Positions 1 to 40,536 of a stretch of DNA of 64,000 bases are shown here, one piece after another (the first letter of the stretch is position 1; every line of letters starts with the position of its first letter). The position numbers and the translations under genes were made by a program. Source of the DNA: Convolutriloba macropyga (lineage: Eukaryota); contig NC_134473.1 of assembly GCF_964194025.1 (NCBI RefSeq), positions 59,210,001 through 59,274,000 of the forward strand. Direction: 5' to 3'. Under the pieces are notes generated by a model. It did no database searches. It was not told the DNA's origin and saw only the letters and a list, made by a program, of their open reading frames with translations.

Positions 1-685
1 ACAGGTGTTATATCTGCTAACTTTAAGGCCTTGGGAAACTTACATTGCATTATAGCATTATTGAAAATCAAAGTTAGTACGGTTGCCACAATATGAGCAC
101 TGTCAATCAATGCCCAAGGTGGGATGGGAGATGGCCCACGAGGTTTGTCTTTTCTAAGTCGCAGTAATTCATCGGTTACTTCGCGTACAGCAAACGAGCG
201 AAAGCCAAAACAATTAGAATCTTGCTCATGTTCAGTCTCTTTGAAGTTTGGTGGAGCACTCCTGCTGCGGCCTAGGTATTCGCCAAGCTTGGAAAACTTA
301 TAGTTGAGTAGTTCGGCAATTTGCATGGGACCAGTTAAAACGTCGCCAAATGAATTTCTAGGACTATCATTACTCATGCTAGGACGGGCCGAGTTTGTTT
401 GTTCATTTATGAAATTCCATCTGTCTTTGTCTGTAGACAATTGTCGTAGGAGATCTTTATTCACTTTCGCTTCATTACTTGAAATAAATTTTCTAAGATT
501 TCTTTGTTTTTCCCGGTAGTGTTTCCGGTTTGTTTCGTTTTGGTTTTCAGAAAACGTTCTAAAAGCATCTTGCTTTTCTTGCAGGGCATGTTTGCACTCG
601 TCATTAAACCAGCCTTTTAAATAATTTTTTCGTGCAGTCCTAACAAAAACTGCTTTTTTTAGGAGCGTAAAGTCTTAAGACTCTT

Positions 686-1780
686 TCAAAAGTATTGTTG
701 AAGTACTCCTCTGTTTTCTGGATCAGAAAGAGTCCATAGAAAACCCCAATTTTGTTGTGAGAGGGTTTTGCAGAATTCTTCTATAGAATAGTAACGCTTA
801 TCAAATATAACCTTTCGGACAGCTTCTTTAGATGGTTTAATATTGCAATGGGATATTACCAACTGAGCCAAATGATCTGATTTGACTATTGTATCACATA
901 CAAATGAATCAGTAAAGGAAGTGTCGGTGACAATGTAATCAATTATGGACGACCAATTTTCAGTAATTCCAGTAGGTAGAAAAGTGTTACAGACTTTAAG
1001 ACCATAAGGATTGAGAACAGTGCTTAGATTGGTTCTTTCAGATTCTTTGAGATAATTTATGTTTAAATCTCCCATGATGGTTAGAGATTTTCCCTCAACA
1101 GCAACAATATCAATGGAACGGTTGAGTGTATTCAGAAAGCTGTCCATAAGACTTTTAGATGGACTATATAAAACCGCAACAACAGCTTTAGTTCCACTTC
1201 CAGTGGATGAGTACTCAACCCACATGCTTTCAAAACTCGTTTGCTCAAAATGTGTACACAGATCAGGTCTCACTTTAGGAGACAGGATTTTTGGGACTGC
1301 TAAAAGAACACCACCGCCCTTAGTGTTGCACTTCCGATCATTTCTGAAAGAGCTATACAATGGATCGAGGTCCCAGAGTTTTTCATCATCCTCAGGTGTC
1401 AACCATGTTTCAGTAATGCCAAAGATTGTGTTTGGTGTCAAGTCTTGGATGAGTTTTATTAGGTGTGTTCTTTGTTTCCTAGCACTTAGTGCGTTGAAGT
1501 GAAAAAATTTGAGTAAAGAAGGAGAACGACTAACCTGATGTTGAAGGTCCATGTAGCCGATTGCTGCTGGTCCGGTGTTTGTCTCCACGTCCCCAAATAG
1601 TAGTAGGGTCTTTGATATATGGTATATTTTGTAAATAAGGAGTGTGAGAAAATATGCGACGTTTCTGGTGTGTTTTTTACCTAATTTGATTACCCTGTTG
1701 CTGTCAACTGTGTAATTAAGATTTGAAATTAAAAGATATAATAAGAAAACCCGAACAAGGAGAGAATAGTATAACATCAA
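686..1780 (-). pseudogene. LINE ORF2 N-terminal part (2A-like peptide + apurinic-like endonuclease), truncated by frameshift
   Basis: 364-aa ORF with APE motifs; LLLFGDVETNTGP with the GDVETNTGP motif at 1594-1568. Confidence 0.85.
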
Positions 1781-1821
1781 TAAACTTAGTTACAGATGAA
1801 TGGCATTAGACTTAGGAAAGA

Positions 1822-2867
1822 TCAGGGCCTGTTTGCGCCTCTGACATAAGTGTATGTTTGCTTAGTGTTACCGTAGTAGCCACCATTATTGAAATAGTGG
1901 TTTCCATTTTTATTAGCCCCGTAGATATTATTATAATTATAATTATAATGATAATTAGACTCATAGTTGGGACGCGGCTTTAGCACTTTTCGTTTATGGG
2001 AATCCGCATATATCGCACCAGTAGCTTGATTAGCTCTTTTGCGTGGTCTAGGAATATGGTTAGTAAATGGGGCAACATAGGAGAACAGGAGGCTTTTCAA
2101 ATAGGGGGTGCCGGTCTCATCATTAAAATGAACAGCATTGTGATATAGCTTGGACCATTTTCCATTAGACTTCACTTTTTGGTTAAGGGGAATGAGAGAG
2201 TATACATCAGAACAAGTGAACATATCATTTAATAGCACATTCACTTGATCAATCTTATACCGAGGGTTTTCGTCGTCAAGATTTTCAACAACTGGGGGGA
2301 TTTCACAAATGAAAATCTTTTGCGGCTGAAACTTTTCATATATTTGAGAGATGAGCGCTTTGATATTGTTCGCAATTTCTTTGGGGGATTTGTAGTTTCC
2401 TTAAAAATGCTATTGGTACCATCTTGTATTATGATGATATTCAATTGCGCAAAGTTCGTTTTTTGCAGTATCGTCATCTTCTCATCCGTTGTGGAACCAG
2501 AATACGGGATAATCTCCACATCTAGCGGCAGCTCGTTTTGGTTCACTCTAGCAACAATACTTGAACCCAGTATCAAATTCGTGGTGGTATTAGCAATTTG
2601 TCTGGTTTGAAAAGACCTGACCTTTAAGTTTTGTGCAGGAGCATCATTGCAGTTGGCGGCTGTAGAGGGTACCACTACATCAGGCTTGTCCACGACACAC
2701 TTGAAGATAGCTTTCTGCTGGTCCAGGATACTGTGGAGCACCTCTTGTCGATTCAGCAGTTGCTTGTTGGTGGCCTCACTGTCTTTGTATCGTTGATGTA
2801 GCTCCATGTATACAGCATATGCCTCTGCTTTGTTAAGTTTGTTGAATGCTTCTTGTGATAGTGCCAT
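1822..2867 (-). pseudogene. LINE ORF1 (coiled coil + SGNH esterase-like), split into two ORF pieces
   Basis: 208-aa and 140-aa overlapping ORFs directly upstream of ORF2; esterase-block motifs as in CR1/L2 ORF1. Confidence 0.7.
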
Positions 2868-3105
2868 GTACCGTGTACAACATACAGAGATCCAGTGGAA
2901 ACGAAACTTGGAATAACTTTATAGGGACGTAATAACATTTTTGGCAAGAAAAAAAGATTTGTACAAACTTGAAAGATCATTGCACGTTTTCTGGAAGTTA
3001 CCCATCATGGCCAGTCTTAAATGTGAACTAAGTATGATATGGGAATCAAACTGAGAAAAAAAGTATTTTCGTCGAAACCACATCATAGTAGAAACCTGTT
3101 TCAAG

Positions 3106-3265
3106 ACAAAACTATACTGATGGATAAATTCGCGTCAACAAGTCTGTGGATTGTGGCTTGCAAATTGACACACAGTAATAGATGGATAGAGCCCCATGGC
3201 TGCTGCAGACTAATCCATTCTACAGAAATCGAAACTCTGGGATATCGAAGCTCGAGAAACCAAAG
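3106..3265 (+). CDS. GNAT (LuxI/FeeM-like) acyltransferase paralog A, exon 2a (exon 1 lies outside the window)
   Basis: (D)KTILMDKFASTSLWIVAC...PHGCCRLIHSTEIETLGYRSSRNQ aligns with exon 2 of B and C; acceptor ttcaag|AC is at the homologous position. Confidence 0.8.
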
Positions 3266-3830
3266 GGATCTGTTTCCTTAAACATCAATTTTATATAATA
3301 TAAAATATAAATTTTTGTTTTTCATAAGCCCATGCTAACGCACAATGAATAATACCAAACGATTGTTTACGCCATGATTAAGTTCAAATTTCGACTCGAA
3401 CCCGAGTTGTTATTTACTTCGAGAGGGTGATAAGAACCGCGTGGTAAATGTCTCTAATCAACTCTCGTTGCGATTACAACAGTTGCATAACTTATAAACC
3501 TGTGGAGCCGTTAAGACTATTTCTTTCCGTCGCTTTTTTCTCGCCACTCTTGTAGAAACAGTGGCGAGAAAAGAGTGGCCCAAAGAAGTAGCCAATTACC
3601 GAAGCAGAGATTTGTCGCTGTTTCAAATTTCCGAAGTATTCATGGGGCACTAATAGGTTATTCCGTAGATAAGTTGAGCACCTGCTGTTCTGGCGTCGAT
3701 AGTTGATTAATTGCAAATATTCTGATAGTACCAGCCATTATAGTTAATATACATTAAAAGTGCTCTACTAAATTATTAAATCTTTTATTGCAATATTGAA
3801 CCGTGGAAGAGGAAACAGTTCCGGCAAAAG
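3266..3830 (+). other. Putative non-canonical GG-AG intron (565 nt) with terminal inverted repeat, specific to paralog A
   Basis: Removal gives CAA AG|T CTA = RNQSLVD, matching RNRSLVD in B. Exons 2a+2b = 160+86 = 246 nt, exactly the exon 2 length of B and C. ggatctgtttcct (3266-3278) pairs with aggaaacagttcc (3810-3822). Confidence 0.7.
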
Positions 3831-3916
3831 TCTAGTTGACCTTGGCAACGAATTTGGTGGCAAGGACTTGGTTGAGATCAACAGGTTTGCGTTGAGGAAA
3901 CAGTTGAGAAACCAAG
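3831..3916 (+). CDS. GNAT paralog A, exon 2b
   Basis: LVDLGNEFGGKDLVEINRFALRKQLRNQ(G), homologous to the 3' part of exon 2 in B/C; ends at a GC donor (CAAG|gcatgt). Confidence 0.8.
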
Positions 3917-3999
3917 GCATGTTTCCCATCAAATTTGGTATGAATTGCGGACTGGCTAAAGATGGAAAAGATGATTAAAAGAGCGATTCAATGGTCAGA

Positions 4000-4571
4000 C
4001 GGTTACATGACAATTTACCCAATTCCATTTTACCCAATGCCAATTTACCCTACGCTATTTTACCCGACCTGCCATTTTACCCAATGCCATTTTACCCAAT
4101 ACCAACTTACCCAATGCTCTTTGATCTTTTTGTTCAATTATCCGATTGCAGTCGCCATTAGCAGTCGCTATTACAAGGATGGTTTAAAATGTTTGTGGAC
4201 AATATAATCTCATGTTCGGTTGTAATATTTTCATATCAAGTCCCACAGGCCATTTAATTATATAGTCCGCTAATTCCATGTTCGGTTGTAATAGTTTCAT
4301 ATCAAGTCCCACAGGCCATTTAATTATATAGTCCGCTAATTCCATGTTCGGTTGTGATAGTTTCATATCAAGTCTCACAGGCCATTTAATGATAAATTGG
4401 CTAATTCCATGTTCGGTTGTGATAGTTTCATATCAAGTCCCACGGGCCATTCATTTTATAGTCGGCTAAATAGTCGTTCTGGTTAATTTAGCAATGGGGT
4501 AAATTGGGTAAGTTGGCATTCGGTATAATGGCATTGGGTAAAATTGAATTTGGTAAATTGTCCTGACACCG
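4000..4571. mobile_element. Non-autonomous DNA transposon (MITE) with CGG...CCG termini, subterminal ccattttaccc repeats and an internal 66-bp minisatellite
   Basis: Imperfect TIR cggttacatgacaatttacc / ggtaaattgtcctgacaccg; 6-bp direct repeat GTCAGA on both sides (3994-3999, 4572-4577); ~4 copies of a 66-bp unit at ~4211-4465. Confidence 0.8.
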
Positions 4572-4975
4572 GTCAGACATGGTCGGATATTGCTTTAAAG
4601 ACCAGCAAAATTGCTTTTACGAGCATTTCTAAATAAAAAGTGACGTTTTTTAGGAAACGCATTTAGTACTGCTTATATTTTTAGAGAGGAAAATTTTTGT
4701 CGAGCAAAAATTGCAGAACAGCAAAACCTATCGTATTGAAAGCAAGCAAATATTCAGACAATTAAATTTTTACCATTCGAAGAATTAAACCATTAGTAAC
4801 TTCAGTTAATATCATGTTTCTTCTTCTTATTATTAGTAGAACACCAAACCTATAATATTGATTTGAAATATTGTGCTAGAATAATTTTTTTGCGCGTAAA
4901 TTTCAATGAACTGTTATCAAATTAATTTACGTTTCACATTTAAAAGAAACAAAGCAAAACACTGAAGCGCAAAAC

Positions 4976-5069
4976 ACCGACAGCTCTCTTGCATATCCGA
5001 CAGCTATCCTGTAATATCTTGCAATATGGTGCACGATCTTGCAAGATTCTTATAAGATAGCAGTCGGTA
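4976..5069. repeat. Short palindromic element (MITE remnant)
   Basis: accgacagct... / ...agcagtcggt inverted ends with internal tcttgca repeats. Confidence 0.45.
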
Positions 5070-5747
5070 ATAGACTAGGTCAATTTTCAGTTTAGAACTC
5101 AAACAAAATCGCAGCGTGTCACAGCATATCAGACAGGTTGAAGGCGGCGAAGGTTAATGGCGACGTGTTCTATTGTACTATCAAACACCCCAACTTTTTT
5201 ATTTTGTGCATCGTGTTTATGTTTATTAGCCGGCGTCAGCCTCTCAACGGCTCTTGGTTTTTTTCAATTCAAGGAATTCGAAATGTATTGGGGGCGTTGT
5301 CTTATTTTAAGATCTGTTCACACATTTTCATGATTTCTGAAGTCATAATGGAGTAGTGATTTTGGTCATGCCGAAACAGGAAATGGAGCGAAAAAGAGAG
5401 TGGTTTTGCGACATGAATTTTTTTCATTCGAATATTCAAGTACAGTAAAAAATCGTTATTTGATCGAAAATTCGCTTTCTGGCTAGTAGTTTTCTGTTTT
5501 TTTTTGTTCACATGCGACAATTTCACATTGATTTTTATTGTTTTTCAACTTTTTGGATAGGATTTTCTTCTAATTGGTTTTCCCAATCCATTCATACTTC
5601 CTTCTAGGCCTAGTATTTTGTTTGAACCAAATTTCCCTCTCTCGCAAGTGGTTTTTTGTTCACATGCGGCATTTTGACTTTGATTTTCTGTTTTTTAATT
5701 TTTTGATCTGATTTTTTTGGAAATAGTTTTCCCAATTCACTCCTAGT

Positions 5748-8060
5748 CTTATGATGAGATAGTTTGTGATTTGCAGAACCTTTGACTGGTGCTTGGAGCT
5801 AGAGGTGAACAAGAGCAGCAAAGGAATGAGAAAAAATGAGAGTCGCTGCCGAAAGCTGAAATGTGACTAAACAAACAATCTGGGTTAAAATTGAAGTAAT
5901 AAAATATATGAAATCAGTTTTCACGCAATTATCCTTGATTTGAGGTAAAATTGAGCTCCAACACTCGGGCTACTGTTGCCACAATCCCCCTGACGGGGAT
6001 AGAGAGGGATCGTGTAGGTTGGGATCGACAGACCTTCGTCCCGATATTTTCCGGGTATTTTTTCTCAAAATATGCGACAAAGTGATGCTTTTAAAATCCG
6101 ACAATTAGAGGAAACATTTCGCGTAGGTCAGAGCATCACCGGAAGAAGTGGCTTTTTCTCAGTTATTTTTTCGCGATAGATTGGTTTTTCGAAGTGATGC
6201 ATTTATTTTTTCTACTATGCGTTGTTTTGTCATGTGAGTTTGCAGCGGCGATTTTGCTTGCAGCTTCAATTTATGGGGGATTGAGTTCAAACGTGATACA
6301 AAGTTATTATTGAAGAGATGGCATGTTTTTTTGTATTAAATTGTATTGACCGTTTGTTCTCTCCGTTTGCTTGGTCAAAATTTAGAGACAGGAATGGTAT
6401 CAAGGCAAGTCTTGAGCGCTCACTGTGCACTTATAGTTACCCTAGTCGATAAGACTCAATAAAAATGACCAGATACTTGTAGGGAACATTTCATTTGTTG
6501 AGTTTCGAACGTAAGAAAGATTCGGGATGTTAACATAGTGACAAATAGCTACAGTTGAAAACTAAACCTAGGAATAATTTCATAGGTATCAAAAGTGAAC
6601 ATAATTACGATTTGAAAGAAAAAAACAAACCTGAGGTCTTTGTTTATTTTTTTAAACTAAAACAACATGCCTTAAGAGGACATATAATTGACTGTATTGA
6701 GTTGCGTATCTTTAACCAGACCGTTTTATGATGAGATGGTTTGTGATTTGCAGAACATTTGAATGGTGCTTGGAGCTAGAGGTGCACGAGAAATCAGTTT
6801 TCACGCAATTATCTTGATTTGAGGTTAGGTTGAGCTCCAGCGCTCGGGCTACTGTTGCCACAATCCTCCTGACGGGAATAGAGGGGGACTGGGTATGTTG
6901 GGACCGACAGACCTTCGTCCCGGTATTTTCCGGGTATTTTTTCTCAAAATATGCGAGAAAGTGATGCTTTTAAAATCCGACAATTAGAGGAAATAATTGG
7001 CGTAGGTCAGAGGATCAACGAAGGAAGTGGTCTGTTTCCTGTTATATTTTCGCGGTACATTGGTTTTTCGATGTGATATTTTTATTTTTTCTACTATGCG
7101 TTGTTTGGGCATGTGAGTTTGCAGCGGCGATTTTGCTTGCAGCTTCAATTTATGGGGGATTGAGTTCAAACGTGATACAAAGTTATTATTGAAGAGATGG
7201 CATGTTTTTTTTGTATTATATTGTATTGACAGTTTGTTCTCTCCGTTTGCTTGGTCAAAATTTAGAGACAGAAATGGTATCAAGGCATATCTTTTGAGCG
7301 CTCACTGTGCAATTATAGTTACTCTAGTCGATAAGACTCAATAAAAATGACCAGAAACTTGTAGGGTAAGAAAGATTCGGGATGTTAACATAGTGACAAA
7401 TAGCTACAGTAGAGAACTAAACGTAGGAATAATTTCTTAGGTATCAAAAGTGAACATAATTACGATTTGAAAGAAAAAAACAAACCTGAGGTTTTTGGTC
7501 GTTTTTTTAAAAATAAAACAACATGCCTTAAGAGGACATGTAATTGACAGTCTTGAGTTGCGTATCTTTAACCAGACCGTCTTATGATGAGATGGTTTGT
7601 GATTTGCAGAACCTTTGACTGGTGCTTGGAGCTAGAGGTGAACGAGAGCAGCAGAGGAATGAGAAAAAATGAGAATCGCTGCCGAAAGCTCAAATGTGAC
7701 TGACCAAACAATCTGGGTTAAAATTGAAGTAATAAAATCTATGACATCAGTTTTCACGCAATTATTCTTGATTTGAGGTAAGGTTGAGCTCCAACACTCG
7801 GGCTACTGTTGCCGCAATCCCCCTAACGGGGATAGAGGGGGATCGGGTAGGTTGGGACCGACAGACCTTCGTCCCGATATTTTGCGGGTATTTTTCTCAA
7901 AATATGCGACAAAGTGATGCTTTTAAAATCCGACAATTAGAGGAAATATTTGGCGTAGGTCAGAGGATCAACGAAGGAAGTGGTCTGTTTCCTGTTGTAT
8001 TTTTGCGGTAGATTGGTTTTTCGATGTGATGCATTTTTTTCTACTATGCGTTGTTTTTTT
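5748..8060. repeat. Tandem array of ~0.86-0.98 kb units (about 2.5 copies) in the last intron of paralog A
   Basis: ttatgatgagat(a/g)gtttgtgatttgcagaac recurs at ~5749, ~6726 and ~7582, each followed by hundreds of near-identical bases. Confidence 0.9.
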
Positions 8061-8406
8061 TGTGAAATTTTTAAATTTAAATTGTTTCTGCTTTTCTGAG
8101 TTTCTTCTCATAGGACCTGGGATATTATGAGAACGGTCATCACCGTCTTTTTTGGCGCTTTTTTTCTTTAGAACGTAGGATAGGAAATAATTTCGTTTTT
8201 TCTTTAGAGCTAGGTTAAGAAAAAAAAATGGCGTGTGTGTGTGGTTGTGAATATTGCAATTTTGGAAGTTTGTGAATTTTGGATGAGAAAGATTCTTTCA
8301 TTAATAACATCCTGAATTGACTAGGAAAAACAATAATGTTAATTATTTGGCTGAGAAAGTGACATAAAACAGGTTTCTAGCGGATGTGGGAAATTTGCCA
8401 AAAAAG

Positions 8407-8786
8407 GAGTTGGACGCGAAATATTGAATATTGCACTTGACATACATCGATGTCTGTGGCCGGATCGACCTCTACTTTACACGACTAATGTGAAAGTTAC
8501 GAAGGAACACGTAATGAACAAACTAGTAGAAACTCAACCAAATAGGTTTTCGCTTCAAATCTTCGGAGATCCTTTTCGATACGAAGAACACGATCCACAT
8601 TATTGCCATACTCATATATTACGGAACAAGTTTACGAGTAATAGCGAGTTTTTATCAGATTCTCAATTCAGAAAAGCTTTGAACCATTCATTGCCAATTA
8701 CAATAGTGAGTTATAAAGATACTGGTTCTTCGCCAAATGAGAAGCAAAATTTTATCTTCGGAAATGTTGCATGGCAAATGAAATAA
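8407..8786 (+). CDS. GNAT paralog A, last exon
   Basis: (G)VGREILNIALDIHRCLWPDRPLLYT...FGDPFRYEEHD...; homologous to the last exons of B and C; TAA stop. Confidence 0.85.
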
Positions 8787-8949
8787 TGTTTCCCTGGGCT
8801 ATTTTCACCAGCTGTTTTTTTACTGTATCAACCTAGTGTCATATTTCATATAACTTTTACCTATCAATTAAATATTTATAAACAAAATTTTCATAGCTGA
8901 CATGCGCGTGGGATTTTACACATAACGTCCCACTCTAGCTGAGTTCGAA

Positions 8950-11344
8950 GCCCCAAATGATCATAACACTATATCTGTGTTCTTTACCGACCTCCTTCAG
9001 CAAATCTGGATATTTTTTTTAATTTCTTTGAATCAATGCCCCATTTTCTGCGAACCGAAAATTCGAAAACTTTAATTTTTGGCGATTTTAACATTAATAT
9101 CTTGGAACAATCAACAATGAAGAAGATATTGTGGAATAATTGAATCGCTTGGATATCGAATCCAAAATAATGAACCAACTCGAAAAACAAATCTCACTTC
9201 TTGCATAGATCATATAACCGATGATGATTTGGTTTGCAAAATTTATGAAATTTCTATCTCAGATCATTATCCAATTTCGAGTAAAGTTCCCTATTGGGTG
9301 CACTCTATTGACCAAAAAAGAATTATAAAATACCGGAATCTGAATCAATTGACTGACCAAAAACTGCTAAACTTTTTGTTTTTGTTAGATCAAAACTTGA
9401 ATAAAAAATCAACGGAATCAGTCGATGGCAAAATTCAGTTTTTAGTTTCGACAATTATGCAAACTCTAAACAGATACGCGCCAGAAAAAAATAGTTATAA
9501 CTAAAAACGGATGTCCCTGGGTTAATAAAGAAATTAGGAATCTTCTTAAAAAACGCGATCAAGCCAGAAAAAAATGGTTTTCGTCTGATAAACCAAAAGA
9601 TAGAGAGAAGTATGTTTCTTTGAGAAATGAAATAACAAGCAAAATTAGAAAATAGCGAGCATATTTTTCGCGGTTGACAGATCAGTAAAATAGCAGAACA
9701 ATTTTTGATACCTTAAAAATTCTAAAGATCCCAAAAAAGAGACGCAGCAAGATGTGGATTTGGACGCTGACCATTTAAATGAAAATTTTAACTATCGGAG
9801 AAAAAATTCTGTCTGATATTCCTAAACTACAGCAACGCCAAAGCAGTAATTGTTTCCTCATTTTGTACAAATCATTATTTACAAAATTATTTACAAAATA
9901 TTGGTTGACTTCATCTCCAAAAACAAAGTTTTCTTGTAGACAATTTGGTTTTCGTTCAAAAAGATCATGTATTCATGCCATAGCTGAAATAACTGAAAAT
10001 ATAAGATTGTCTATGAATAACAAAAACCCTTGCGCATCAGTTTTCCTTGATATAATAAAAGCTTTTGATACCATTGATCACTCACTGTTACTCAACAAAC
10101 TAGAAAGTTTTGGTTTTAGGGGCAATTTTAAAAAGCTTATTCAGTCCTACCTCAACAGCAGCCAACAATATGTTTTCTTCCAGTCCAAAACCTCTGAGAT
10201 TAAAAATATTAAAAATGTTGTCCCACAGGGCTCTGTGCTAGGCCCACTCCTCTTCCTAATTTTTGTAAATGATCTGCCAACAAATATGCAAAAATTGGAA
10301 ATCACATTGTTTGCTGACGATACCAAGATACTTTGTGGTGGAAAAGATATTGAAAAAAATCTCAAAGATAGCATTAGGGAGGTGATATTATGGTTCAATG
10401 AAAACAAACTTTGCGTTAATTCTAAAAAATCTCAGTTGATGTAATTTGGTAAAGACTTAGGGCTTAATTTGAACCCAATTTTATCAGATTGTGAACTACA
10501 AGAATCTGTAAAATATATAGGTATAACTCTTGATAGAAAACTGAATTTTGATTTTCATATTCAACAAACTATGAACAAATTAAAAAGGTGTTTTCTATAG
10601 AATTCGCGACTATTATACAATTTCAAAATTGATACAGTTTTATAACGTGTTTGCTAAGCCAGTGATCTCTTAAGGTCTATTGGTTTATGGCTGCACAAAC
10701 AAAAAGAGACTAACAAAAATTGATATGTGCCAACGAAAAATTTTGCGAGCCATCTTCTATCGAAAGCGGACAGATAGCCTTCAACATTACTACAGAAAAC
10801 ACAAAATACTCACTGTTTTTGACTTCTGTTTCTTGAACTTCTGAAGGAAACTGTTGAAGAAATTGCAAAGAGATCTCCTTGCTCTTTCATTAATCTTGAA
10901 AACGTGTCGTCGTGTAAATACCACACACGGAACCTCAAAAAAAAATTAATAAGGCAGGTCAAATTTAATAATGCAGCACTTGGAAACTCACTGCGGTTAA
11001 GGCTGACCAAGACTTATAATTTTTGCAAATCGAACTACCTTTTCCCTCAGATATTGAAATTCAAAAAATGAATTCGAAGCAGCTCAAAAATTTAGTAGAT
11101 CAAATTTTCCAAAACTATCTTTTCGACAGTGTCTTTTTTTACGTTAATTTTTGGCTGATTAGTGGCTGAGGTACACACTAACTCGTTCCTATTTTTCTTT
11201 AAAGTAAAATTTAATTGATAAATTTTTCAAAAGGGACGTCACCTAAACGAGCTGTAAAGCTTATCTGACGTACCTCTTGAAAACGTGTATAGTTATCAAT
11301 TGTAAACTGTTTTCAAGGAAGTTAATTCAACTTATAACTTATAA
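8950..11344 (+). mobile_element. 5'-truncated, degenerate CR1/L2-type LINE (endonuclease remnant + reverse transcriptase)
   Basis: VLYRPP and GDFNIN (APE) at ~8970-9100; SDHYPI; RT motifs QFGFRSKRS, VFLDIIKAFDTIDH, VPQGSVLGPLLFLIFVND, LFADDT; 3' tail of short repeats (ttcaacttataacttataac); many stops and frameshifts. Confidence 0.92.
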
Positions 11345-15207: not shown

Positions 15208-16130
15208 CCCAGGTCTAGATACAGACTTATGAAAAGACAATGCTCGACCAAAATGTGCTATGAAAAGACCATACGCGACTCATTTGAGATATGAAAAGAG
15301 TTTAGCTGGACTTTAATACGTTCTGGACCACATTTGCTTGACTCAGATTTTCAGCACAAGACTTTAGCTGGACTCAAAATTTTCCAAAAACATTGGCTCT
15401 ACCCAAAATATGGGCTGGTTTTAAGCTCGACACAATGTTTGCAAACAAATTGGAGTTAAAGTCTTTTCATGGGTCCATCATTGTTCTTTTCATAAGTCTA
15501 ATATTTTTTATTATTATTGTTTTACGTGCAATATTGCATATAACGTAGTCCGCATGTATGCTTCATCACCTTTTACGATTCAGAAAAACCACAAATCCCT
15601 CAAAAACCTCTTTTATTTCTTAAAAAACATAGCTCATAATTTCGGAAGGGTAAACAAATTGACTTACGCCGAAATTTTGTCATGGTTAATGGGACTAGGA
15701 CCAATACATTTAAGCTAGCTGGTTTCATTGAATCAAGTAATGTGGTAATGTATTCAAGCTACCTTAACTCTTTATCTTAACATTTGATAACGTTCTTAAG
15801 GCTTTCGGCAGCTTTCCAACTGATTATTAAACAGGACTGCTCTAATGCAAAGCTAGTTAGTCTTGCTCCGGTTCTGCTTCGGTATGTACGAAGCAGGAAG
15901 AAAAAAATTTCGAATTCTGAAAAAAACAGACTTATGAAAAGACTAATTAATGGTGGACCCATGAAAAGTCCTTAACTCAACTTTGTTGGTTATGAAATGA
16001 CTTTAGCTCGACCCATGAAATGATATTAGCTCGACTTTAACTAGGAAGCTCAACCGTGTAAGTATAGTCAATATTGGTTCCCCTACAACGAATTTTAAAG
16101 TCTTTTCATAAGTCCAGGCCTAAGCCTGGG
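15208..16130 (+). mobile_element. Non-autonomous DNA transposon with CCC...GGG termini (EnSpm/CACTA-like), with atgaaaagac subterminal repeats
   Basis: TIR cccaggtctag / ctaagcctggg; an inverted homolog lies at 34085-35058. Confidence 0.8.
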
Positions 16131-18794: not shown

Positions 18795-18999
18795 ATGAGA
18801 TCCGCTCTCAAACACCAGTTGTGCACTCTCTCTTCGTCTCTGAAGAACGTAGTTTATGTGGTAACAAATGCCAACCACACTCCAGATGTTGTTTCTGTTG
18901 CCGGCAGTATCCTATATGATGTCTACATCAAAGAATTGGGCTGGAAGTTTGGCAAGGACAACCCATCGCAAATCAGAGTTGAACGTTGCTCAAAAACAG
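18795..18999 (+). CDS. GNAT (LuxI/FeeM-like) acyltransferase paralog B, coding exon 1
   Basis: MRSALKHQL...GSILYDVYIKELGWKFGKDNPSQIRVERCSKT; close paralog at 38441; donor ACAG|gtggat, phase 1. Confidence 0.85.
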
Positions 19000-19887
19000 G
19001 TGGATGATAAGGAACTAATTCAAACCGTTCTTAAAATTGTAAAAACAGATTCAAAATTATAACAGAGATCAAATAATTTATTTACGAGATCAAAACTATC
19101 ATTGAGTTGCGCAGTTTCCGTTGTAGACATTTGGAACTATTTTTAAGGGTGAATTGATTTGTTCGGTTGAAAATTACTCGAAAGCAAGAAATGTAGGGAG
19201 ACACTAAAAAATTTCACTTTCAATCCAGACATTTAACCAGTGATTTATTGTTGAAATTGAACAAATACTGATAAATACAATTAACTACAATTAAGACTAA
19301 GGTTTTTAATTTGATTGAAGAAATTCGTTTAGTACTTTTACTGCCGTTTGAAGGCACCAGGCATGAAGTGAAGCGATGCTCTTATTGGCTACAGGATACG
19401 GTTTTATCATATTTTTTTCCAGATCTGCTCAATTTCAAAGCTGGGAGAAACATCTTTCGGTATAGGGTAGCGGATAAGAAAGCAATCCACAGTTGTGAAA
19501 GCGTTTCTCGACTTTTTTGGTGTTTCTAGCCAAATTGAATACTGCTCATTTTTTAAAAGGCCCCATATGTTTACCGCAAAAATTTTTGGATAGCAAAGTG
19601 TGTCACATTTTGCGATGCAAAATATTAGAAATCACCGAAAAACCGAAAGCTGACATTGATTGAAATTTCATACGGAAAAAATAGATAGTTCGGTTGTCTT
19701 GAAAGGGACAGCCAGTTGATTACATCAGCAAGGAGTTTGAATTTTAGACGGTTGTAAACTTCGTCAATATTTTTAGCCTTTTAAATTTTTCACCATATTT
19801 GAAATAGATCATTTATCATTTCCAAATACCTCTCAAAACTATACGGCCAAGGGATCATTACTTCTTGTCCTTATTAAAAACATATTT

Positions 19888-20114
19888 CCCGGGCCGGGGC
19901 GTCCACCCGTATTCCACCGTTATTAAGCGAGAATAAGGGTGTAAAGCCAATTCCACTCTTAATTAGCAAGGAAAAGTGTGTAAGAGTGTAATTTTAAGAA
20001 AATTACATCTTTTCGTATACTTTTTGCACTCTTTGGTCCACTCTTAATACATTTTCAAAAATACACTATAATTACACTCTTTTGTCTACTCTTTAATGCA
20101 CTCTTTTCCCTGGG
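19888..20114. mobile_element. Short CCC...GGG MITE with acactctt repeats; related copy at ~55094-55300
   Basis: cccggg...ccctggg ends; shares aagagtgta...ttttaagaaattacac with ~55180-55220. Confidence 0.55.
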
Positions 20115-20630
20115 TGAAGCCTCCTGAGAGGTGTCTCAGATCGATCAAAGCAAAAAATTATGTAAGATATTATTATTATTATTACTGAATATTATTATTA
20201 AAATCATTATTATTTAAAAAATACTCAAGAGAAACGCGAAATTAAAGAAAAAATTAGCAATTTTTGCCAATACTAGTTTTTGTGGTAAATTCCTCGGCCC
20301 GAGTTCAGATGTACATTTAAAATCAAAGGACTCCTTGAGGGTTAAAATAGGAGCAAAACTATAAAAAAACATCAATGTTGATATCTTCCCTCAACTTCAC
20401 GCTCAATTACTGCACAGGGGTATGAATGCTTGTTAAAGCAATCTAAAACTGATCAGAAGTAGCTTTTAGCTGCGAAGGGCTGAGTAGAGGAAGTTTCGAC
20501 TCGAGAAACATCATTGCCGCCAGTGTCCAAAAAAACTATTTATTTTCTTTTTATTTCAAACTGATTATTATCAGTGTTCCACTCAGACACTATAGTGTTC
20601 CTTATCATCATCCTAAAATTTTTTTGAAAG

Positions 20631-20876
20631 ACAAAATGATACTGACGGATAAATTTGCGTCAACAAGTCTATGGGTCATCGCGTGTGAACTAACCGGCAA
20701 TAATGGAACAGTAGAGCCCCATGGTTGCTTCAGGCTAATCCATTCTACAGAAATCGAAGCTTTGGGATATGAAAGCCAGCGAAACAGAAGTCTGGTCGAT
20801 TTGAGAAGATTTTATGGTGACAGTGGCTTAATTGAGATGAACAGACTAGCGTTGAGGAAACAGTTGAGGAATCAGG
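20631..20876 (+). CDS. GNAT paralog B, exon 2 (246 nt)
   Basis: (D)KMILTDKFASTSLWVIAC...PHGCFRLIHSTEIEALGY...LIEMNRLALRKQLRNQ(G); acceptor tgaaag|AC, donor CAGG|gtacac; phases match the neighbouring exons. Confidence 0.85.
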
Positions 20877-21779
20877 GTACACTTCCCCTCCTATTTCTTA
20901 GGGTTTAAATTTTGTTTGTGGTTTTCAGTGAGCTTCGCCGTATTCACTGCAATCTTCGTGTGGGAGAAAAAAATGTTTATCACCGCCGTTCACAGCAAAT
21001 TGATGTTTTCTGATTATACCTCGGTCCTGGTAGTAAAATAACTGACAAAAAGACCGCTATTCCACGCCGGTCCAAAGAGGTGCTCAATTTTCGGGCAAGA
21101 ATATATTTAGCCAAATTAGAAAATATTACTAAATATTACGGATTTTTATTTAGTTGTACATGTGTTCAATGATTTTAGAAAATGAAGATTCTCAAGGACG
21201 CTCATGGAGGAAGTTTGCATTAATATAAACTTGGGGCAAATCAATTGTGTTCATATAGTTTAGTCTTTGACCTCTTCGATTTGAAATTTTTTTAAAGGGG
21301 GGAACTGAATTTCCGTCATTCTTCTGTCTTCTTGGACTCATAACTTTCTGCTTGGTTTCAAAGTCAGTGAAATGTTTGCAAAGAACCTGCTCAATTATGA
21401 CAAAAAACATCAATTTCCGAAGCACTTCCTTCAATTTGTCAAAAAAAGAAACCTCATTGATGTCATCCTAATACCATTATTCTAAAGTTTGGAGGAAAAG
21501 ATCAAAGAATTAAGAAAATGAGGAGGCTCAGTAATGTGCGTTCGCAAATAATGTTCCAACCTCTTAATTGTCTACCAAAAGAGAAGGGGATAAAAAATTT
21601 CAAAATTCAACATACCGTTCAACAATTCATTGATTGAATCAAACAATCTACCTTAGAGGGCCAATGAGACCTGTCATTGACCAACGTTGCTAAAAAAACG
21701 TTTAAAAAAGTTTTAAAAATTTGCTTTTTGAAAATATATTACTTTAAAATAATAAAAATCATTATATATCAAGACAAAT

Positions 21780-24550
21780 CATTTATACCTCGATAAGAAG
21801 TGGTTGAGACCGCTCAGTATCTAGGATATGACATACGCCGACAAAAAGAACGACAAAAGCTGGTGAAAAAATTTAAACTTTGCACTAAAACGGTGTCCCA
21901 GCCAATAAAACAATCAAGTGCTCACTACGCATACTAAAAAAATTTTTCTCAAATGGAAACGAAAATACGCATTATTGTGATACTGTGCAATGGAAATAAA
22001 AACCTAAAAATGGGCAAATGTTCAAAAATGACAAACGTTCTAGGAAAACTCGTATTACAATGAACGAAAACCATTTTTGCAAAATGAAATTGTTATAAAG
22101 AGCAAACTGTAGCTTGATAGACGAGGGAATTGACCTGCCTATATTACAGATTTTAAGCCACAATTCAGCAGAAATAAGATTTAAAAACTTGGCAAAACTC
22201 TGAAATCCATTGATTTTTTTGAAAATAAATTATTTCAAAAGTCACAACGAAAAAAAAACTTAACTTAAATAACAGCTGGACTTTTGTGCAACTTCTTAGA
22301 AATCCAATTTCGCTGAACAATAGCGAGTCTAAGTCATATGACAACATAATACCAACAAATACTAGCAGAACAGAAAAAAAACTTCACAAATCAGTTAACG
22401 AAACCAGAATGTTGAAGCAATTATAATTATAGGACATTAGCTAGCGGATTTTATATCATCACTTGCGTCTTCTTTGAACACAATAAAGTCTTCATTGTAA
22501 TTGGCCTATTTCAGAATAAAAACGAAAAGAACCACAAACTTTTAAAAATAACTAAAACTCTCAAAACTTTTACAAAACAAAATGTCTAAGCCCTAAAGTC
22601 AAAACGGTTAACCATCAGAAAAAATAATGTTTGGAGCAGCAACAACAATGAAACCTCTAAATATTGAGCCTGGCTAATTAAAAAAACGACGAAATTGTAA
22701 AATACAAAAAAAAAAGATTAAAATTATAACAAAAAAGAAAAGCTAAATAAAACTTGAAAAAAAATCTGAAAGCCTTTAGAATCATTAGTTATCAATTGAT
22801 ATCAAATATTACTTTGATAGAAAATGATTGAGACCACTAAGTATCTAGGATCTGACATACGACTACAAAAAAATTTAAAGTGCTCACTGCGGACACTAAT
22901 AAGTTTTTCTCAGTAGGAGACGAAACCACGCATTATTGTGATACTCTGCAAAAAAAACAAAAACATAAAAAATGGGCAAATGTTTATTACCAAGAACAGA
23001 AACCACTTTTGCAAAATAAAACTGTTTTAAAAAGCAAATTGTAGTTGACTAAATGAAGGAATTGACTTGCCTATATTACAGATACTCAGCCACAATTAAA
23101 CAGAAATAAGATTCATTATATTGGCAAAGCTCTAAAATCCATTGATTATTTCTTCTCAAAGGGCACAACGAAAAAAAATTTTCAAGTTAAAAACAAGCCA
23201 GTTTATCGTGCAACTTCTTAGAAAATCAATTACGCGTAATTTTAACTTGCGTGAACCTGAGTCATAAGAGTACATCATATCAAAAAAAACCAGCAGAACT
23301 GAAAGGTTTTACAAACTATTTTATGAAACCACAGTGTTGAAGTCATTATAATTATAAAACATTAGCCTCGGGGATGTTATATCTTCACTTGCGTCATTAA
23401 TGAATATCATAAAATCTTCATTTTAATTAGTAAATTCTTGGTATCTTTATTGTAAATAGTTTTGTAATTGCCCTATCGCAGACAAAAAACAAAAATTTTA
23501 ATCATCAAAAAAATTAATGTTTGGTGCAGCAACAACAATGAAAACTTTCAATAATGAACGTAAGGTATGAGAATAAGAGGAAATTGTAAAATACAAAACG
23601 ATAACAAAAAAGAAGAGCTAAAGAAAACTTTTTGCTTTTTTTTAAAAAAAATTTGAAAGTCATTAGAAACATTAGTTATCAACTGATATCAAATATTACT
23701 TCGATAAAAAGTGATTGCGACCGCTCCGTATCCAGGATATGTTATACGACTACAGAAAGAACAACAATTATAGGTGAAAAATATTCATTTCCATTAAAAC
23801 GGCGTCCAGACCAATTTTTACAGTGCTCACTAAGAACAATAATAGGTTTTTCTCAAATAGAGACGAAACGACGCATTATTGTGATAGTGTGCAAAGGAAA
23901 CAAAAACTTGAAAAAAATAGGCAAACGTTCAAAAATCACGGACATTTGATGAAAACTCGTATTACCATGAACAACAACAATTTTTGCAAAATAAGACTGT
24001 TTTAAAAAGCAAATTGTAGTTGACTAGATGAGGGAAGTGATTTAGCTATAGTCCAGATACTGAGCCACAACTCAAAAGATGTAAGATTTATAAAGTTGGC
24101 AGAGCTCTAAACCCCATGGACTTCTTTGAAAATAAAAAGTTTCAAGGACACAACGAAAAAAAGTGTTCACTATGAATAATAGCTAATTTATTGTGCGTAA
24201 TATTAGTAAACTTAAGTGATATGACAACATAATACAAACAAATACCAGCAGAACAGAAAAATTTCACAAACTAGTTAACAAAATCAGAGTGTTGAAGCAA
24301 TTATAATTATAGGACATTAGTCAGCGGATTTTATATCTTCACTTGCGTCTTCTTTGAACACAACAAAGTCTTCATTGTGATTGGCCTATTTCGGAATAAA
24401 AACAAAAAGAACCACAAACATTGAAAAAAAACTAAAACTCACAAAATTTTTACAAAACAAAATTTCTAAGTGCTAAGGTCAAAACGTTTAACCATCCCAT
24501 CAGAAAAATTAATGTTTGAAGCAACAATAACAAAGAATCCTCTCAATAAT
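21780..24550. repeat. Tandem array of ~0.95-kb diverged units (~3 copies) in the last intron of paralog B
   Basis: acgcattattgtgata recurs at ~21967, ~22928 and ~23871 with collinear flanks. Confidence 0.85.
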
Positions 24551-26572
24551 GAGCTTATAAAAGTATTATATCAAAGAAACAAAAATGAACTAAAAAATTG
24601 AGCAATTACAAACAAAAATCCCAATAGTTTGCATGAAAACTTGCAGTACTACCTAGAAGTCGTTTTTTAAAAAGAACGTAACAATTTTATTATATTTTTT
24701 CTATAAAAACAAAGTTCGACCAGTTTTTACTTAGATTGAGCTTTAAGTTGATAGAAAAAAGATGAAAAAAACAAAAAATCACTGAAGTTTTCTTGAAACA
24801 AATTTAATCAAAGCCCTGAGAGACAATAGATAACAGCCGAACGCATTGTGTAGGTTCACTTACACATCTTAATGATGTCACTTGGATCTTTGGTTATTTA
24901 GGCTGAATAATCAGACTGCGAAAGGAATAAAAAACAAAGGCAAAACCCAAGAATTTATTTAATGTTTACAAAAAATCTTCGACAGAGCCATGAAAACCAG
25001 TAGCTTTTCTCTGAAATCCAACTACAAATTCATTTGGTCTCCCTTTTCACTTAATATGGAGTTTTTTTTTAATTGGGTCGTTATTTGAAACTTTCGTCGG
25101 TAAATAACATTAAAACAAACAGAAGCAATTTTTTTGAAAAAAAAACAGCGCCCAAATAAAATTCGAAAAAATTATTTTTTTTTGCAAGGATTCATGATGC
25201 CATCAAACCTATTCACGAGTTTGCCGCGCCTTTAAAAATCCACATGATTCTGCAGAGTATTTTGCGGATTAGTATAATTGTAAAAAGAAATTTTTCAAAA
25301 ATAAAAAAGATAAAGCAATTTTTATATTTGTCGAGATAAATTTGCAAAAAACCGGCAACGTTTTAATCCAAGAAGATTTTTTATGGAAACCAGCGTTCAA
25401 CTAGTGCTCTTGCGGAGTTCTTGGAGAATTTATCAGCGGATTTTAAGTCTCTGTTTTCGGCAAATCTAAACAAAGTGGACCAAAAAATCTTACTTGGTGC
25501 CATTTTTGATGAAAAAATTGTGAAGTTGGAAAGTTTTATCAAAAATTTTAGCTGAAGAAAATCAATCGAACAAATAAGCAACTCTCCTATATCTCTAAAG
25601 GTATAAACAAAATCTAAGCGTAACAATTTTAACATTCTTTAGGTTTTATTAGCCGAATTGAAATTTATATTGGCAAATTTTAGCGAAAATTACGCAAAAT
25701 TTGAAAAAAAAATGTAGAATATTCATAAAACTTCAAACCTGGATAACTCACTGTAAGAAACGAATTTCAAAATAAAACTTAATTCCATATTCTAGGCTGT
25801 AGGGACTTTCCAATTATACCACTCACAACTCTCTACGATGAATATTTCGAATTTCGATCGGCCAAAATCGATCGAACAAAAAATCCCATTTGAGTATATA
25901 GATCCTCCCTCCCCTCTAAAGTATGGGTCGGGACAATATTTTCGACTCAATTTTTCAAAAGAATTTTTGCAGTTGTGATAAGTAGATTGTGCAGAATGTG
26001 TTTGCTTCCCCATGAGCCATATTGAAAGTCTATAAAGCACGATAATGGGTCTTTTATTAAAAAAAATATTTTCTTTGCAGCGCCTATTCAGATGTTTTGC
26101 GTTCTATAAGAGAAACAAGCTAAGTACCAAAACACTTAACTGGAGACTCAAAAAGATGAAGACTAGCTAAATGGAGTCCCATTAGAAAGAAATCGAGCAG
26201 TCTGACGGTGTCATAACCGAAAAAGTGAAAAATTTTGCAAGTTTTATCAACCTTTACTTTTTTCCTGAACAATTTAAAGATGTGAAAATCTCTTCAAATA
26301 AAGATGCAGGGTTTTGAGAGATTTTCTATGATACCGCTCCTCTTTCTCTTCGCAAAGAATATCAATATACCGCAATTATCTCATCAAATAAACGTCAAAC
26401 TTGCATAAAGTTCCTAACCTCCATTTCATAAAAGGTTGGAACATCAATTTTAGGGGGGAAGATAACAAATAAGATAAGATCAGAATTGAAGCATATAAGG
26501 TAAAAATATGTGGAAGAATAAAATAAGTGTATTGTGGAAGAACAAATGGGGAAAAGTACATTGAACAATTAG

Positions 26573-26868
26573 GAGTTGGATTCGGGATAATAAATACAGC
26601 AATTGGGGTGCATTATCGGGAGTGGAGAAACCGACCTATAGTGTTCACACCTCAAGCAAGTACAGCCAATCAGCATGTCATCACAAAGACTATAGAAGAG
26701 AACCCCAATTTATATTCTGTTGGACATTATGGTGAGCCATTTCGGTACGAGGAACATGACGACAACACTTGTCAGATTATGATTATTCAAGCTAAAATGA
26801 ACACCCGTTCTAACTTTAGAGGTGATCACGATTTAAACAGGGCTTCAAACTTTACAGTATTGAACTAA
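26573..26868 (+). CDS. GNAT paralog B, last exon (full protein 248 aa)
   Basis: (G)VGFGIINTAIGVHYREWRNRPIVFTP...YGEPFRYEEHDD...; acceptor aattag|GA; TAA stop; AATAAA at 26974-26979. Confidence 0.85.
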
Positions 26869-34084: not shown

Positions 34085-35058
34085 CCCAGGCCTAGGCCTC
34101 GACCTATGAAAAGACTTTGAAAGTCTAGTAGGGGGGGGGGCTAATATTGACTATAATTACACGGTCGAGCTTCATAGTTAAAGTCGAGCTAATGTATTTT
34201 CATGGGTAGAGCTTAAGTCTTATCATAACGAAGAAAGTTCAGCTAAGATCTTTTCATGGGTCCACCCTTAGTCATTTCATAACCAACAAAGTCGAGTAAA
34301 GGTCTTTTCATGGGTCAACCATTAGTTTTCTCTTAGTTTTTTTTAAATCCGAAATTTTTAATTTTTTCCGCTTCTGTACATACAGAAGCACAACCGGAGC
34401 AAGACTAAATAGCTTTGCAGTCCAGAGCAGTCCAACTTAAGTAACAGCTGGAAAACTGCCTAAAAGCTTTAAGATCTTCGTCAAATCTTAAGATATCTAA
34501 GTTATAGCAGCTCGAGTATATTACCACATTACTTGATTCAATGAAGCCAGCTAGCTTAAGTGTATTGGTCCTAGTCCCATTAGCCATGACAAAATTTCGG
34601 CGTTATTTAGTTTGTTTCCCCTCCAAAATTATAAACTATGTTTTTTTTATAAAAATAATGCAGATTTTGAGGGATTAGTAGTTCTTTTGAATCGTAAAAA
34701 ATGAAGGAGCATACACGCTGACTACGTTATATGCAATATTGCACGGACAATTTTAATGGCAAAAAAACAGACTTAAGAAAAGACTAATGATGGACCCATT
34801 AAAAGATTTTAACTCGACTTTGTTTGCAAACATTGTGTCGAGCTTAAGTCCAGCCCAAATATTGAGTCGAGCTAAAGTCTTTTGTAATATTTTGTGTCCA
34901 GCTAAAATCTTGTGCGAAAAATCTGAGTCGAGTTAAAGTCCAGAAAGTCCTAGAGTCCAGCTAAAATCTTTTCATAGCTCAAATAAGTCGAGTATGGTCT
35001 TTTCATAGTACATTTGGGTCAAGCATTGTCTTTTCATAAATCTGTACCTAGACCTGGG
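34085..35058 (-). mobile_element. Second, inverted copy of the CCC...GGG element at 15208-16130
   Basis: TIR cccaggcctag / ctagacctggg; CA dinucleotide on both sides (candidate 2-bp TSD); collinear reverse-complement homology. Confidence 0.85.
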
Positions 35059-38440: not shown

Positions 38441-38645
38441 ATGAGAGCAGCTGCTAGACACCAATTGCTTACTCGTTTTTCATCTCTGAAGAATGTACTC
38501 TATGTGGTAACAAATGCCAGTCACACTCCAGATGTGGTGTCAATAACTGGCAGTATCCTCTACGATGTCTTTATCAAAGAACTGGGCTGGAAATTTGGCA
38601 AGGATAACCCTTCAAAACTCAGAGTTGAACGCTGCTCAAAAACAG
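38441..38645 (+). CDS. GNAT (LuxI/FeeM-like) acyltransferase paralog C, coding exon 1
   Basis: MRAAARHQLLTRFSSLKN...ILYDVFIKELGWKFGKDNPSKLRVERCSKT; 205 nt as in B; same donor. Confidence 0.85.
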
Positions 38646-40536
38646 GTGGATGATAGGGCACTATTTTGGAACATTATTTTCCTTTTTGAAGAGGAAACAT
38701 GAAAGTTCATGTTCAACCGGGTTCTATTTCTTTTTTACGCCGATTTATTTTACCCCCGCAAACTTTTCAGTCCAAAACCAATTCCCAATATCTTACGTAT
38801 CTCCTGTTTTCGGTGTAAATACCTAAATGCTGTACACAATTCCCAATCTTTTAAGTTAATCGTACCAATTATTTAAAGCATTATGGTTGGAGTGAATCAA
38901 TCGGTGGTAAATAATAGGGTGTCAAATAAATAGGGGCAAAAAACGGTCAACCTCATAACCAATAAGTTCAGTATTAGGAATATTAACAACAATCAGTATT
39001 TACGAATTGCCTGTTAAAAAATGAAACAAGGGCGGCTGTTCGATTTTGCGCTTATATATAAAGTGATACGAAATGCTCTTAATTTTTCATGTTGGTTGGT
39101 AAGGAGGTCGTTTAAACTCTTCTTGAAACACTTCTCGTGGGTCTTTTCAATCTGGCACAGGATTCGGTTTTGGATCTTCTTAGTCTGGCCAAGGGTACAG
39201 TCAAAGTTTGCTGTCTGGCTTATACATAAATTTTATTAGGTGCGAGCTGCACCCCCTTTTGCGCGAAGCAAGTCCGGCTGTTCCAAACCTCTCTTTTGGG
39301 TCGAGGATCACATCTTTTAGATGTTAAAAATTCTACTGCTAAATATATTTAAACATCACAAATTTACGTTCCGAGACATTAACAGCTGTTTAATTTACAA
39401 TTGCCAATCTGTTGTTTACTTGATTGGCCTAGCTTAGAAAATTTCAAAAAAGGAAAAAAAATGGAAGTAGGTTGTGAGTATAGGATTCTTTCACACCGGT
39501 TCTGAGAATTTTGCACCAAAAAAGCGGAAACAAAAAAGTACCCACCACGAATCCAGAATTTGAGACTCAAAAATGGGTCACTGAAATTTCAAAGTCATGG
39601 AGTAGTTCAAGCCTGTCGAACTTTTCGAAAATGTCTCAAATTTTTCTCGACAAAATATCAACGACCCGCAAAAACTTCACAAGAAAACTGTAATTACACT
39701 TTGTTTAGGCTTTGATTTTTTAAAAATTAATTTCTTAAAGGGGAGGCCGTACATTATTTAACTATGAGAGCAACAATAAACAGATTTTCAGAAAAAACAA
39801 AATTAATAATAAATTGCTTTCAATTAGGCCATGAGCATTACCATAATTAACCAAGCTACAACAAAGCACAACCCACTTGCTAAGTCATCGAAAGGTCCTT
39901 ACGGTCCTAGTAGAATGATGCCAAGAAGAAGCACTAAGGTTTATGGGAGATTTTGTTCGTGAGAAGAAAAAAATCAGGGTAGATAAAAAAAGAGAGTGGA
40001 GACATCTTCTTTATTGACAAAATAGTTATCGTAGTTATTACTAAAATTATTATGGAAAATTTTTTCTTGGTTTTGCTTAAGTTTTTGCTCTTTTTTAAAG
40101 AAATCAGGTTAAAGTTTTAGTATGAAGTTTAGTAGTTTTCGAATGCTCTTTAGGCTGAGAACGCTCACAGTGTTAGTTAATTTTAGTGGTCGCGCTTTTG
40201 TTCTTGTTGACTGAACAGTTTCTGTCTCTTTTTTTTTGTTGTAAGGTCATCAAGAGAACTGATTTCAAAGTTTTTCTCTTAGTATTTCAATTAGTTTTTT
40301 GATTAGTAGATTTTTGACAAAAAAAGTACAACACAGAACTGTCAAACCAAGTTAATAATAAGCATCTCATCTGATATATAGAGCAAATACTTGACCCTTT
40401 TGTTCAAACAAAAGGAAACAAGACGTCTGGCATGGTTCTTTGAGTGCCACAAATCGTTGCAACAATCGTATTTGAAAGCATTATAACAACATATCGGAAT
40501 GGAATTCGAAACGTTTATATTAGAAATGGGTTTTTG

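Follow-up and report, generated by a model that had tools for sequence, protein, structure and literature searches.

What is the 565-nt stretch that splits exon 2 of one gene in a tandem family of Convolutriloba macropyga and is missing from its two neighbours: a transposon that broke the gene, or a transposon that became an intron? The window that we analysed, 64,000 nucleotides of the C. macropyga genome (OZ077304.1:59210001-59274000, assembly GCA_964194025.3), is AT-rich and dense in transposons, and self-comparison reveals three tandem units in it, A, B and C, each carrying a three-exon GNAT-like acyltransferase gene. Here, we propose as the probable answer that a foldback transposon inserted into exon 2 of gene A and is excised as a GG-AG intron, with the reading frame restored.

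The structure of the family sets the terms of the question. Exon order was taken from distant homologues of 212-301 aa (P0005-P0007), which a representative search, queried with exon 2 of B, had returned. The three exons of gene B lie at 18795-18999, 20631-20876 and 26573-26868, and those of gene C at 38441-38645, 41972-42217 and 53677-53987; in both genes exon 2 is on the plus strand, measures 246 nt and is unsplit, presenting an empty site. In gene A (LOC142341086), exon 1 lies about 13 kb upstream, beyond the edge of the window (L001 10001-10187), and exon 2, on the plus strand, comes in 2 parts, one of 160 nt (3106-3265, aligning to B 20631-20790 and C 41972-42131) and one of 86 nt (3831-3916). 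A GC-AG intron 2 follows on the same strand (3917-8406, with the junction of the RefSeq model), and then exon 3 with the stop codon (8407-8786, plus strand), an open frame of 125 codons in which the family-invariant residues are kept. Once 3266-3830 is removed, exon 2 of A, B and C aligns without gaps and in frame, in agreement with the 160+86 nt against 246 nt given in an earlier note on this DNA. That note placed the start of the intron at 3258 and so took in 8 exon bases, the putative left duplication; the intron proper is 3266-3830.

Two other readings of the exon structure were rejected. The first was that A had lost its start codon: the ATG that B and C have in exon 2 codes for an internal Met, and exon 1 lies upstream according to both RefSeq and the homologues. 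The second took a strongly conserved block for the last exon, when it is exon 1 of the next gene. As regards annotation, the exon-1 ORF of A clusters with XP_075248064.1, while that of B (18795-19004, P0018), when set against P0016 and P0015, stands in a cluster by itself to which no RefSeq protein belongs, so that gene B, with its canonical introns, may lack a RefSeq protein model, unlike A. The introns and flanks of these genes also carry repeats of their own. Large tandem arrays occupy intron 2 of C (units of ~1.1 kb, ~5 copies, 88-99% identity, 48261-53595) and of A (units of ~0.9 kb, 5746-8057); intron 2 of A further holds an element (4000-4571) with inverted TTACCCAAT-rich arms (4000-4065 and 4506-4571) that enclose 132-nt tandem repeats (4205-4469); and a repeat of ~950 bp is found, at 79% identity and in opposite orientations, downstream of A (15208-16130) and at the matching place in the B unit (34085-35058).

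The genes of this family are, by prediction, GNAT-type acyltransferases, the motif-A region included. Relatives of the family (P0005-P0007, P0011, P0012) match the GNAT domains PF00583, PF13444, PF13508 and PF21926 (best E 2e-6 to 1e-4), and the protein of gene A (P0015) has a weak GNAT match over the motif-A region, at residues 122-159, downstream of the insert. The acetyltransferase matches in a PDB profile search were all sub-threshold.

What does the insert itself look like? It occupies 3266-3830 on the plus strand, is present in A and in a second copy of the gene, D (see below), and is absent from B and C. It begins GGATCTGTTTCC and ends ...GGAAACAGTTCC GGCAAAAG. Terminal inverted repeats stand exactly at its ends, GGATCTGTTTCCT at the 5' side (3266-3278, plus strand), the first base of which is also the first base of the intron, and AGGAAACAGTTCC at the 3' side (3810-3822, plus strand); they are complementary at 12 of 13 positions, and the terminal pair can be written GGAWCTGTTTCC ... 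GGAAACAGWTCC. The 12-mer GGAWCTGTTTCC has no other occurrence in the window. The ends have a pairing energy of -22.6 kcal/mol, against -9.1 +/- 2.7 kcal/mol in shuffles (p < 0.001). The interior folds back as well, with inner inverted repeats (3455-3495 / 3669-3709, spanning 3455-3709 on the plus strand) nested around a central hairpin (3517-3591), and the fold of the whole insert has z = -5.5 against shuffles. Rfam returned only sub-threshold miRNA-hairpin matches on the insert, and a tRNA or Pol III cassette within it, sought with ARAGORN and Rfam, was dismissed when nothing was found.

The junctions are equally specific. The last 8 exon bases, AACCAAAG (3258-3265, plus strand; B and C read AACAGAAG here), are the putative left copy of a target duplication, and GGCAAAAG, the 8 nt that separate the 3' repeat from the exon (3823-3830, plus strand), the putative right copy. 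On recounting, the two are identical at 5 of 8 positions, as had been noted earlier, which is a weak match (chance p ~0.04). The last two bases of GGCAAAAG are the AG of the 3' splice site, and no other AG lies between it and the 3' arm. The boundaries of the insert can be slid by 4 nt only (AAAG), with GG...AG being the sole register that ends in AG. As the earlier note had seen, the insert starts with GG and, if retained, is read into a TAA (3279-3281). Translation would then end at residue 121, ahead of GNAT motif A.

Where might such a sequence come from? The earlier note had likened the start of the insert to the ends of MITEs in the window, and the likeness bears counting: GGATCTNTTYC occurs 6 times in the window against 0.28 expected, and the five occurrences outside the insert are ends of a local MITE family. 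Members of this family measure 57-200 bp, have ends of the form GGATCTTTTCCGTTTGTG and make 8-bp target duplications, the latter as the note had supposed; the reference copy (57807-57947) is flanked by AAGAAGTC/AAGAAGTG (7/8, p = 0.0007) and the copy at 55877-55933 by CAAAATGC/CAAATTCC (6/8). Further copies lie at 59947-60112, 60194-60395, 40536-40694 and 41684-41787, with 59947-60395 forming a head-to-head MITE pair that has a long G run at ~60350-60375. Between GGATCTGTTTCC and the MITE end GGATCTTTTCC, the first 6 bases and a TTTCC core are common, with a 1-nt indel, and similarity ends after ~12 nt. The interior of the insert has no blastn similarity to any copy of the GGATCTTTTCC family, the caveat that the earlier note had itself attached, and we therefore do not class the insert as a member; at most it was mobilised by a related transposase.

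The interior does have a relative elsewhere in the window. Positions 83-459 of the insert align at ~65-70% identity to 55404-55789, within a decayed second copy (55316-55990) that is non-coding, lies downstream of gene C and is interrupted by the 57-bp GGATCT MITE at 55877-55933. No coding ORFs were found near 55316-55990. The ends of this copy are unrecognisable and unalignable, apart from a short resemblance, GGCGAAAA, to the 8 nt after the 3' repeat, which appears in reverse orientation only. As its interior has a second copy, the insert is probably a repeated and once mobile sequence. No further copies turned up in ~125 kb of other C. macropyga loci, which leaves one copy besides the insert, a decayed one, in the ~190 kb examined. 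The insert thus has the hallmarks of a transposon: inverted repeats at its ends, an interior that folds back, a further copy in a decayed state, and paralogs in which its site is precisely empty. Judging from these sequences, it is probably a DNA element of the foldback, MITE-like kind, and a related transposase may have moved it. Of the earlier description of a domesticated GGATC MITE, then, the transposon hallmarks and the splice-site geometry hold, while membership of that family comes down to ~12 bases at the start and the geometry of the 8 nt.

Is gene A still a working gene? A plain disrupting insertion, with A dead or dying and the insert retained in any RNA, would suit a stretch that starts without GT and whose retention brings a stop after 5 codons. 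It would also suit a transposon-rich region, where intron 1 harbours a LINE and a reverse-transcriptase ORF follows downstream, and the fact that no transcript of A was seen among the protein and contig collections searched. Against it stands a second genomic copy of A, copy D, recovered along contig ctg35858_54x_l of ENA assembly ERZ25071359 (L002-L007), which carries the homologous insert with an identical junction. The 270-codon frame is intact in both of these insert-bearing copies. Between them dN is 0.0135 and dS 0.1145, a ratio of 0.12, with 18.5 synonymous and 8.5 non-synonymous changes (p = 7e-8); exon 3 alone has 9 differences, mostly synonymous. Since the insert is in both A and D, purifying selection acted after its arrival. 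Moreover, the stretch downstream of the insert, which would be left untranslated under retention, has 7 synonymous and 3 non-synonymous changes when taken alone (ratio 0.11, p = 0.0012). With the downstream codons under selection and retention stopping translation at residue 121, the insert must be removed exactly.

The wider family and the annotation say the same of gene A. It keeps 28/28 of the family-invariant residues, its dN/dS against B and C (0.22-0.25) is similar to that between B and C, and RefSeq lists it as protein-coding with the insert removed exactly. The dN/dS check that the earlier note had asked for, in order to exclude a pseudogene, was thus carried out, and the ratio of 0.12 against D together with the intact frames rejects a neutral or dead paralog. 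From its codons, gene A reads as a functional gene and is not a pseudogene, and we regard a simple disrupting insertion as exceedingly improbable.

What is copy D? The coverage tags of the contigs are 51x and 54x. Non-coding divergence between A and D is a mosaic of 0-22% (window 2870-9086): it is 0-2.5% at 3701-6000, ~5% elsewhere in introns, with intron 2 at 2.5-5%, and 11-22% over the initial 440 nt of the insert; directly after the stop codon it reaches 23%. This mosaic suggests recombination or gene conversion between the copies. The divergence of 2.5-5% in the intron is near the published heterozygosity of C. macropyga, 3.65% (PMC13650328), and D is therefore probably the other haplotype; that it is instead a very recent duplicate is less likely. 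The two copies differ in their load of other elements. Intron 1 of A holds a 4.5-kb non-LTR retrotransposon (LINE) on the minus strand (window 1-2869; L001 18417-22921), whose endonuclease ORF (689-1780) matches PF03372 (1e-6); it is missing from copy D, so that its insertion is recent or polymorphic. In D, the insert houses an 18,648-bp Maverick/Polinton-like element (contig ctg35858_54x_l 61574-80221; L006 3921 to L007 14583). The terminal repeats of this element are perfect over at least 34 bp, its duplication (GTCGAT) measures 6 bp, and an ORF of 854 aa in it matches DNA_pol_B_2, a protein-primed polymerase B (E = 8e-9). The matching empty site in the window is 3695-3700, and the new intron is ~34-fold longer in D with the coding frame still intact.

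If the insert is removed, where are the cuts? The RefSeq model of gene A, XP_075248064.1 (P0015, LOC142341086), joins CAAAG to TCTAG and is identical to a model made of GG(3266)-AG(3830) and GC(3917)-AG(8406). An ordinary intron with a canonical donor would be the obvious competitor. The earlier note had held that the boundary offers no GT or GC that could be used, which is too strong: five canonical GT/GC-AG combinations near the boundaries are in frame and leave the frame open, namely GT 3272 with AG 3830, 3818 or 3809, and also those from GC 3250. Their products would, on the other hand, be 1-9 residues longer than the paralogs imply, or 7 shorter (GC 3250 with AG 3835), and GTTTCC is a poor donor; the exon of the paralogs is reproduced without gaps by GG(3266)-AG(3830) only, which is also what RefSeq models. 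A canonical intron that uses GT 3272 or GC 3250 with AG 3830, 3818 or 3809 is accordingly very unlikely in our estimation. If it had no transcript evidence to draw on, the NCBI annotation pipeline should favour a canonical splice pair, and the choice of GG-AG suggests that RNA-seq support stands behind the RefSeq model. Protein searches with profile A1, P0015 and P0015:60-146, along with cluster look-ups, recovered no transcripts of gene A; they returned genomic ORFs and the RefSeq model only, with no Logan or transcriptome contig among them. An RNA-seq run of C. macropyga has been published (ERR13669978; PMC13650328). From the RefSeq junction and the selection on A against D, we infer that splicing takes place directly before GG at the 5' end and directly after AG at the 3' end.

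Removal by the minor spliceosome was considered as well. A U12-type intron has the 5' site RTATCCTT and, 10-26 nt before its 3' end, a branch site TCCTTAAC. This candidate was rejected, the 5' end of the insert being GGATCTGT and its last 30 nt having no TCCTTAAC-like motif. The string TTCCTTAAA occurs in the insert at the 5' end only.

Was the intron gained in A, or did B and C lose it? The earlier note spoke of an introner-type gain, of which the specificity of the insert to A against B and C stands, the gain itself being putative. An old intron that predates the split between A and (B,C) and was precisely lost in the B/C ancestor has several points in common with the data: under the tree ((B,C),A), a gain in A and a loss on the B/C stem are one event each after duplication; the 8-mers differ at 3 of 8 positions, which speaks against a young insertion; the family's other two introns are old and look as if they, too, derive from transposons; and dS is 0.68 between B and C and above 1.5 between A and either of them. 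The outgroup homologues found are contigs of ~1 kb without gene structure. Against an old intron, precise loss is rare or usually takes neighbouring introns with it, and B and C have kept introns 1 and 2. In addition, the terminal repeat of the insert still matches at 12 of 13 positions and its interior is still alignable to the second copy. We therefore consider an old intron unlikely, and a gain in the A lineage would be the better account.

In light of these results, how might the intron have arisen, and how might it be spliced? We propose that a non-autonomous foldback DNA transposon of ~557 bp, whose terminal repeat starts GGATCT as in the local MITEs with their 8-bp target duplications, entered exon 2 of paralog A between a Gln and a Ser codon. 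The pre-mRNA would be cut on the 5' side exactly where the 5' repeat begins (between AAAG and GGAUCU) and on the 3' side at the first AG past the 3' repeat, 8 nt beyond it and probably within the second copy of the target duplication. The element and one duplication copy, 565 nt together, would thereby be excised and the original reading frame restored exactly. Pairing of the 12-bp repeats in the RNA probably brings the cut sites together, and would help a permissive major spliceosome to accept GG at the 5' site.

Pairing between intron ends is not confined to the insert. Each intron of the gene family (19000-20630, 38646-41971, 20877-26572, 42218-53676 and 3917-8406 were examined) has complementary ends. 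The 5' arm begins at one of the positions +1 to +3, 7-19 nt separate the 3' arm from the exon, and the acceptor is the first AG past the 3' arm; the ends are conserved across the family and the interiors are unalignable. In B intron 1, GGATGATAAGGAAC pairs with GTTCCTTATCATCC over 14 bp. Compared with shuffles, end pairing has p = 0.004 in B intron 1, <0.001 in C intron 1, <0.001 in the insert, 0.023 in A intron 2, 0.035 in C intron 2 and 0.16 in B intron 2, and it is not significant in intron 1 of A or of D. The ends of A intron 2 pair as 3916-3928 with 8387-8399, a stem in which the last G of the exon takes part too. The donor of intron 2 reads GCATGT in A, GTACAC in B and GTACAG in C. In B and C, GUAC pairs with GUAC (in B, 20877-20888 with 26548-26559), and in A the pair U2-A has become C2-G (GUAC/GUAC to GGCA/UGCC), with the terminal stem kept. 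Three independent introns and one double change thus suggest that end pairing is maintained in the gene family, while D has pair-breaking changes. One of these is in the 3' repeat of the D insert, where a single C-to-A difference disrupts a pair; pairing is thus not visibly constrained between A and D.

A speculative extension, which we hold to be possible though doubtful, is that in C. macropyga the pairing of intron ends is part of the splice-site code. If this were true, a stem reaching from the 5' boundary to 7-19 nt before the first AG would allow any base at +2 (GG, GC, GA) to be accepted, and any inverted-repeat transposon landing in an exon would be born as an intron.

To our knowledge, intron gain has rarely been caught with its mechanism visible, and animal introns that were born from transposons and start with something other than GT are documented essentially only in larvacean tunicates. 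Our literature search found no report of transposon-born non-GT introns in acoels or other xenacoelomorphs. The present locus amounts to a natural experiment, in which filled and empty paralogs are neighbours and purifying selection acts on the filled gene, and copy D has even tolerated an extra 18.6-kb element inside the new intron. C. macropyga could be a tractable bilaterian in which to ask how GN-AG introns come to be tolerated by a spliceosome and if the pairing of their ends is of help.

How does the insert compare with known systems? Transposon-born introns with inverted-repeat ends and non-canonical borders have been described in Fritillaria, Amoebophrya and euglenids, and transposon-born introns with canonical borders in Micromonas and Aureococcus (PMC11282704). 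The MITE-derived introns of Fritillaria borealis (Henriet et al. 2019, as reviewed in PMC11282704) resemble the insert in being lineage-specific introns of an animal nuclear gene, in having terminal inverted repeats, border repeats that look like target duplications and a 5' dinucleotide other than GT, and in their removal by a permissive spliceosome, which for the insert we infer. The Fritillaria introns, however, are mostly AG-AC or AG-AT and belong to a genome dominated by non-canonical introns, whereas the insert is GG-AG, with a normal 3' AG, in an acoel host (PMC11282704). The introners of Micromonas and Aureococcus (the model of Huff et al. 2016, Fig. 2 of PMC11282704) are short non-autonomous DNA transposons that have one splice site in the end of the element and take the 3' AG from the target duplication, the element being excised exactly together with one duplication copy; the proposed geometry of the insert equals this model. 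Introners have GT or GC donors, 3-nt duplications and thousands of near-identical copies (PMC11282704), whereas the insert has a GG donor, a weak putative 8-nt duplication and one other, decayed copy in the ~190 kb examined.

The splice sites and the pairing have parallels of their own. The GA-AG introns of Oikopleura dioica and Eurytemora affinis share with the insert a G at +1, a base other than T at +2 and a normal 3' AG, and the context of the insert, AAAG followed by GGA, resembles their AG followed by GA.A in its exonic AG and its A at +3 (PMC7072748). They differ in that the insert has G at +2 and in that they were described as a splice-site class, with no link to inverted repeats or transposons (PMC7072748). 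The nonconventional introns of euglenids and the repeat-bearing introns of Amoebophrya have inverted repeats near their ends that pair in the RNA and draw the ends together, along with non-canonical borders and duplication-like repeats at the junctions (PMC11282704), and the layout of the insert resembles theirs. Those of euglenids have no AG requirement and are thought to be removed outside the standard pathway (PMC11282704); the insert, by contrast, ends with the AG that follows first upon the stem, in keeping with an ordinary choice of the 3' site.
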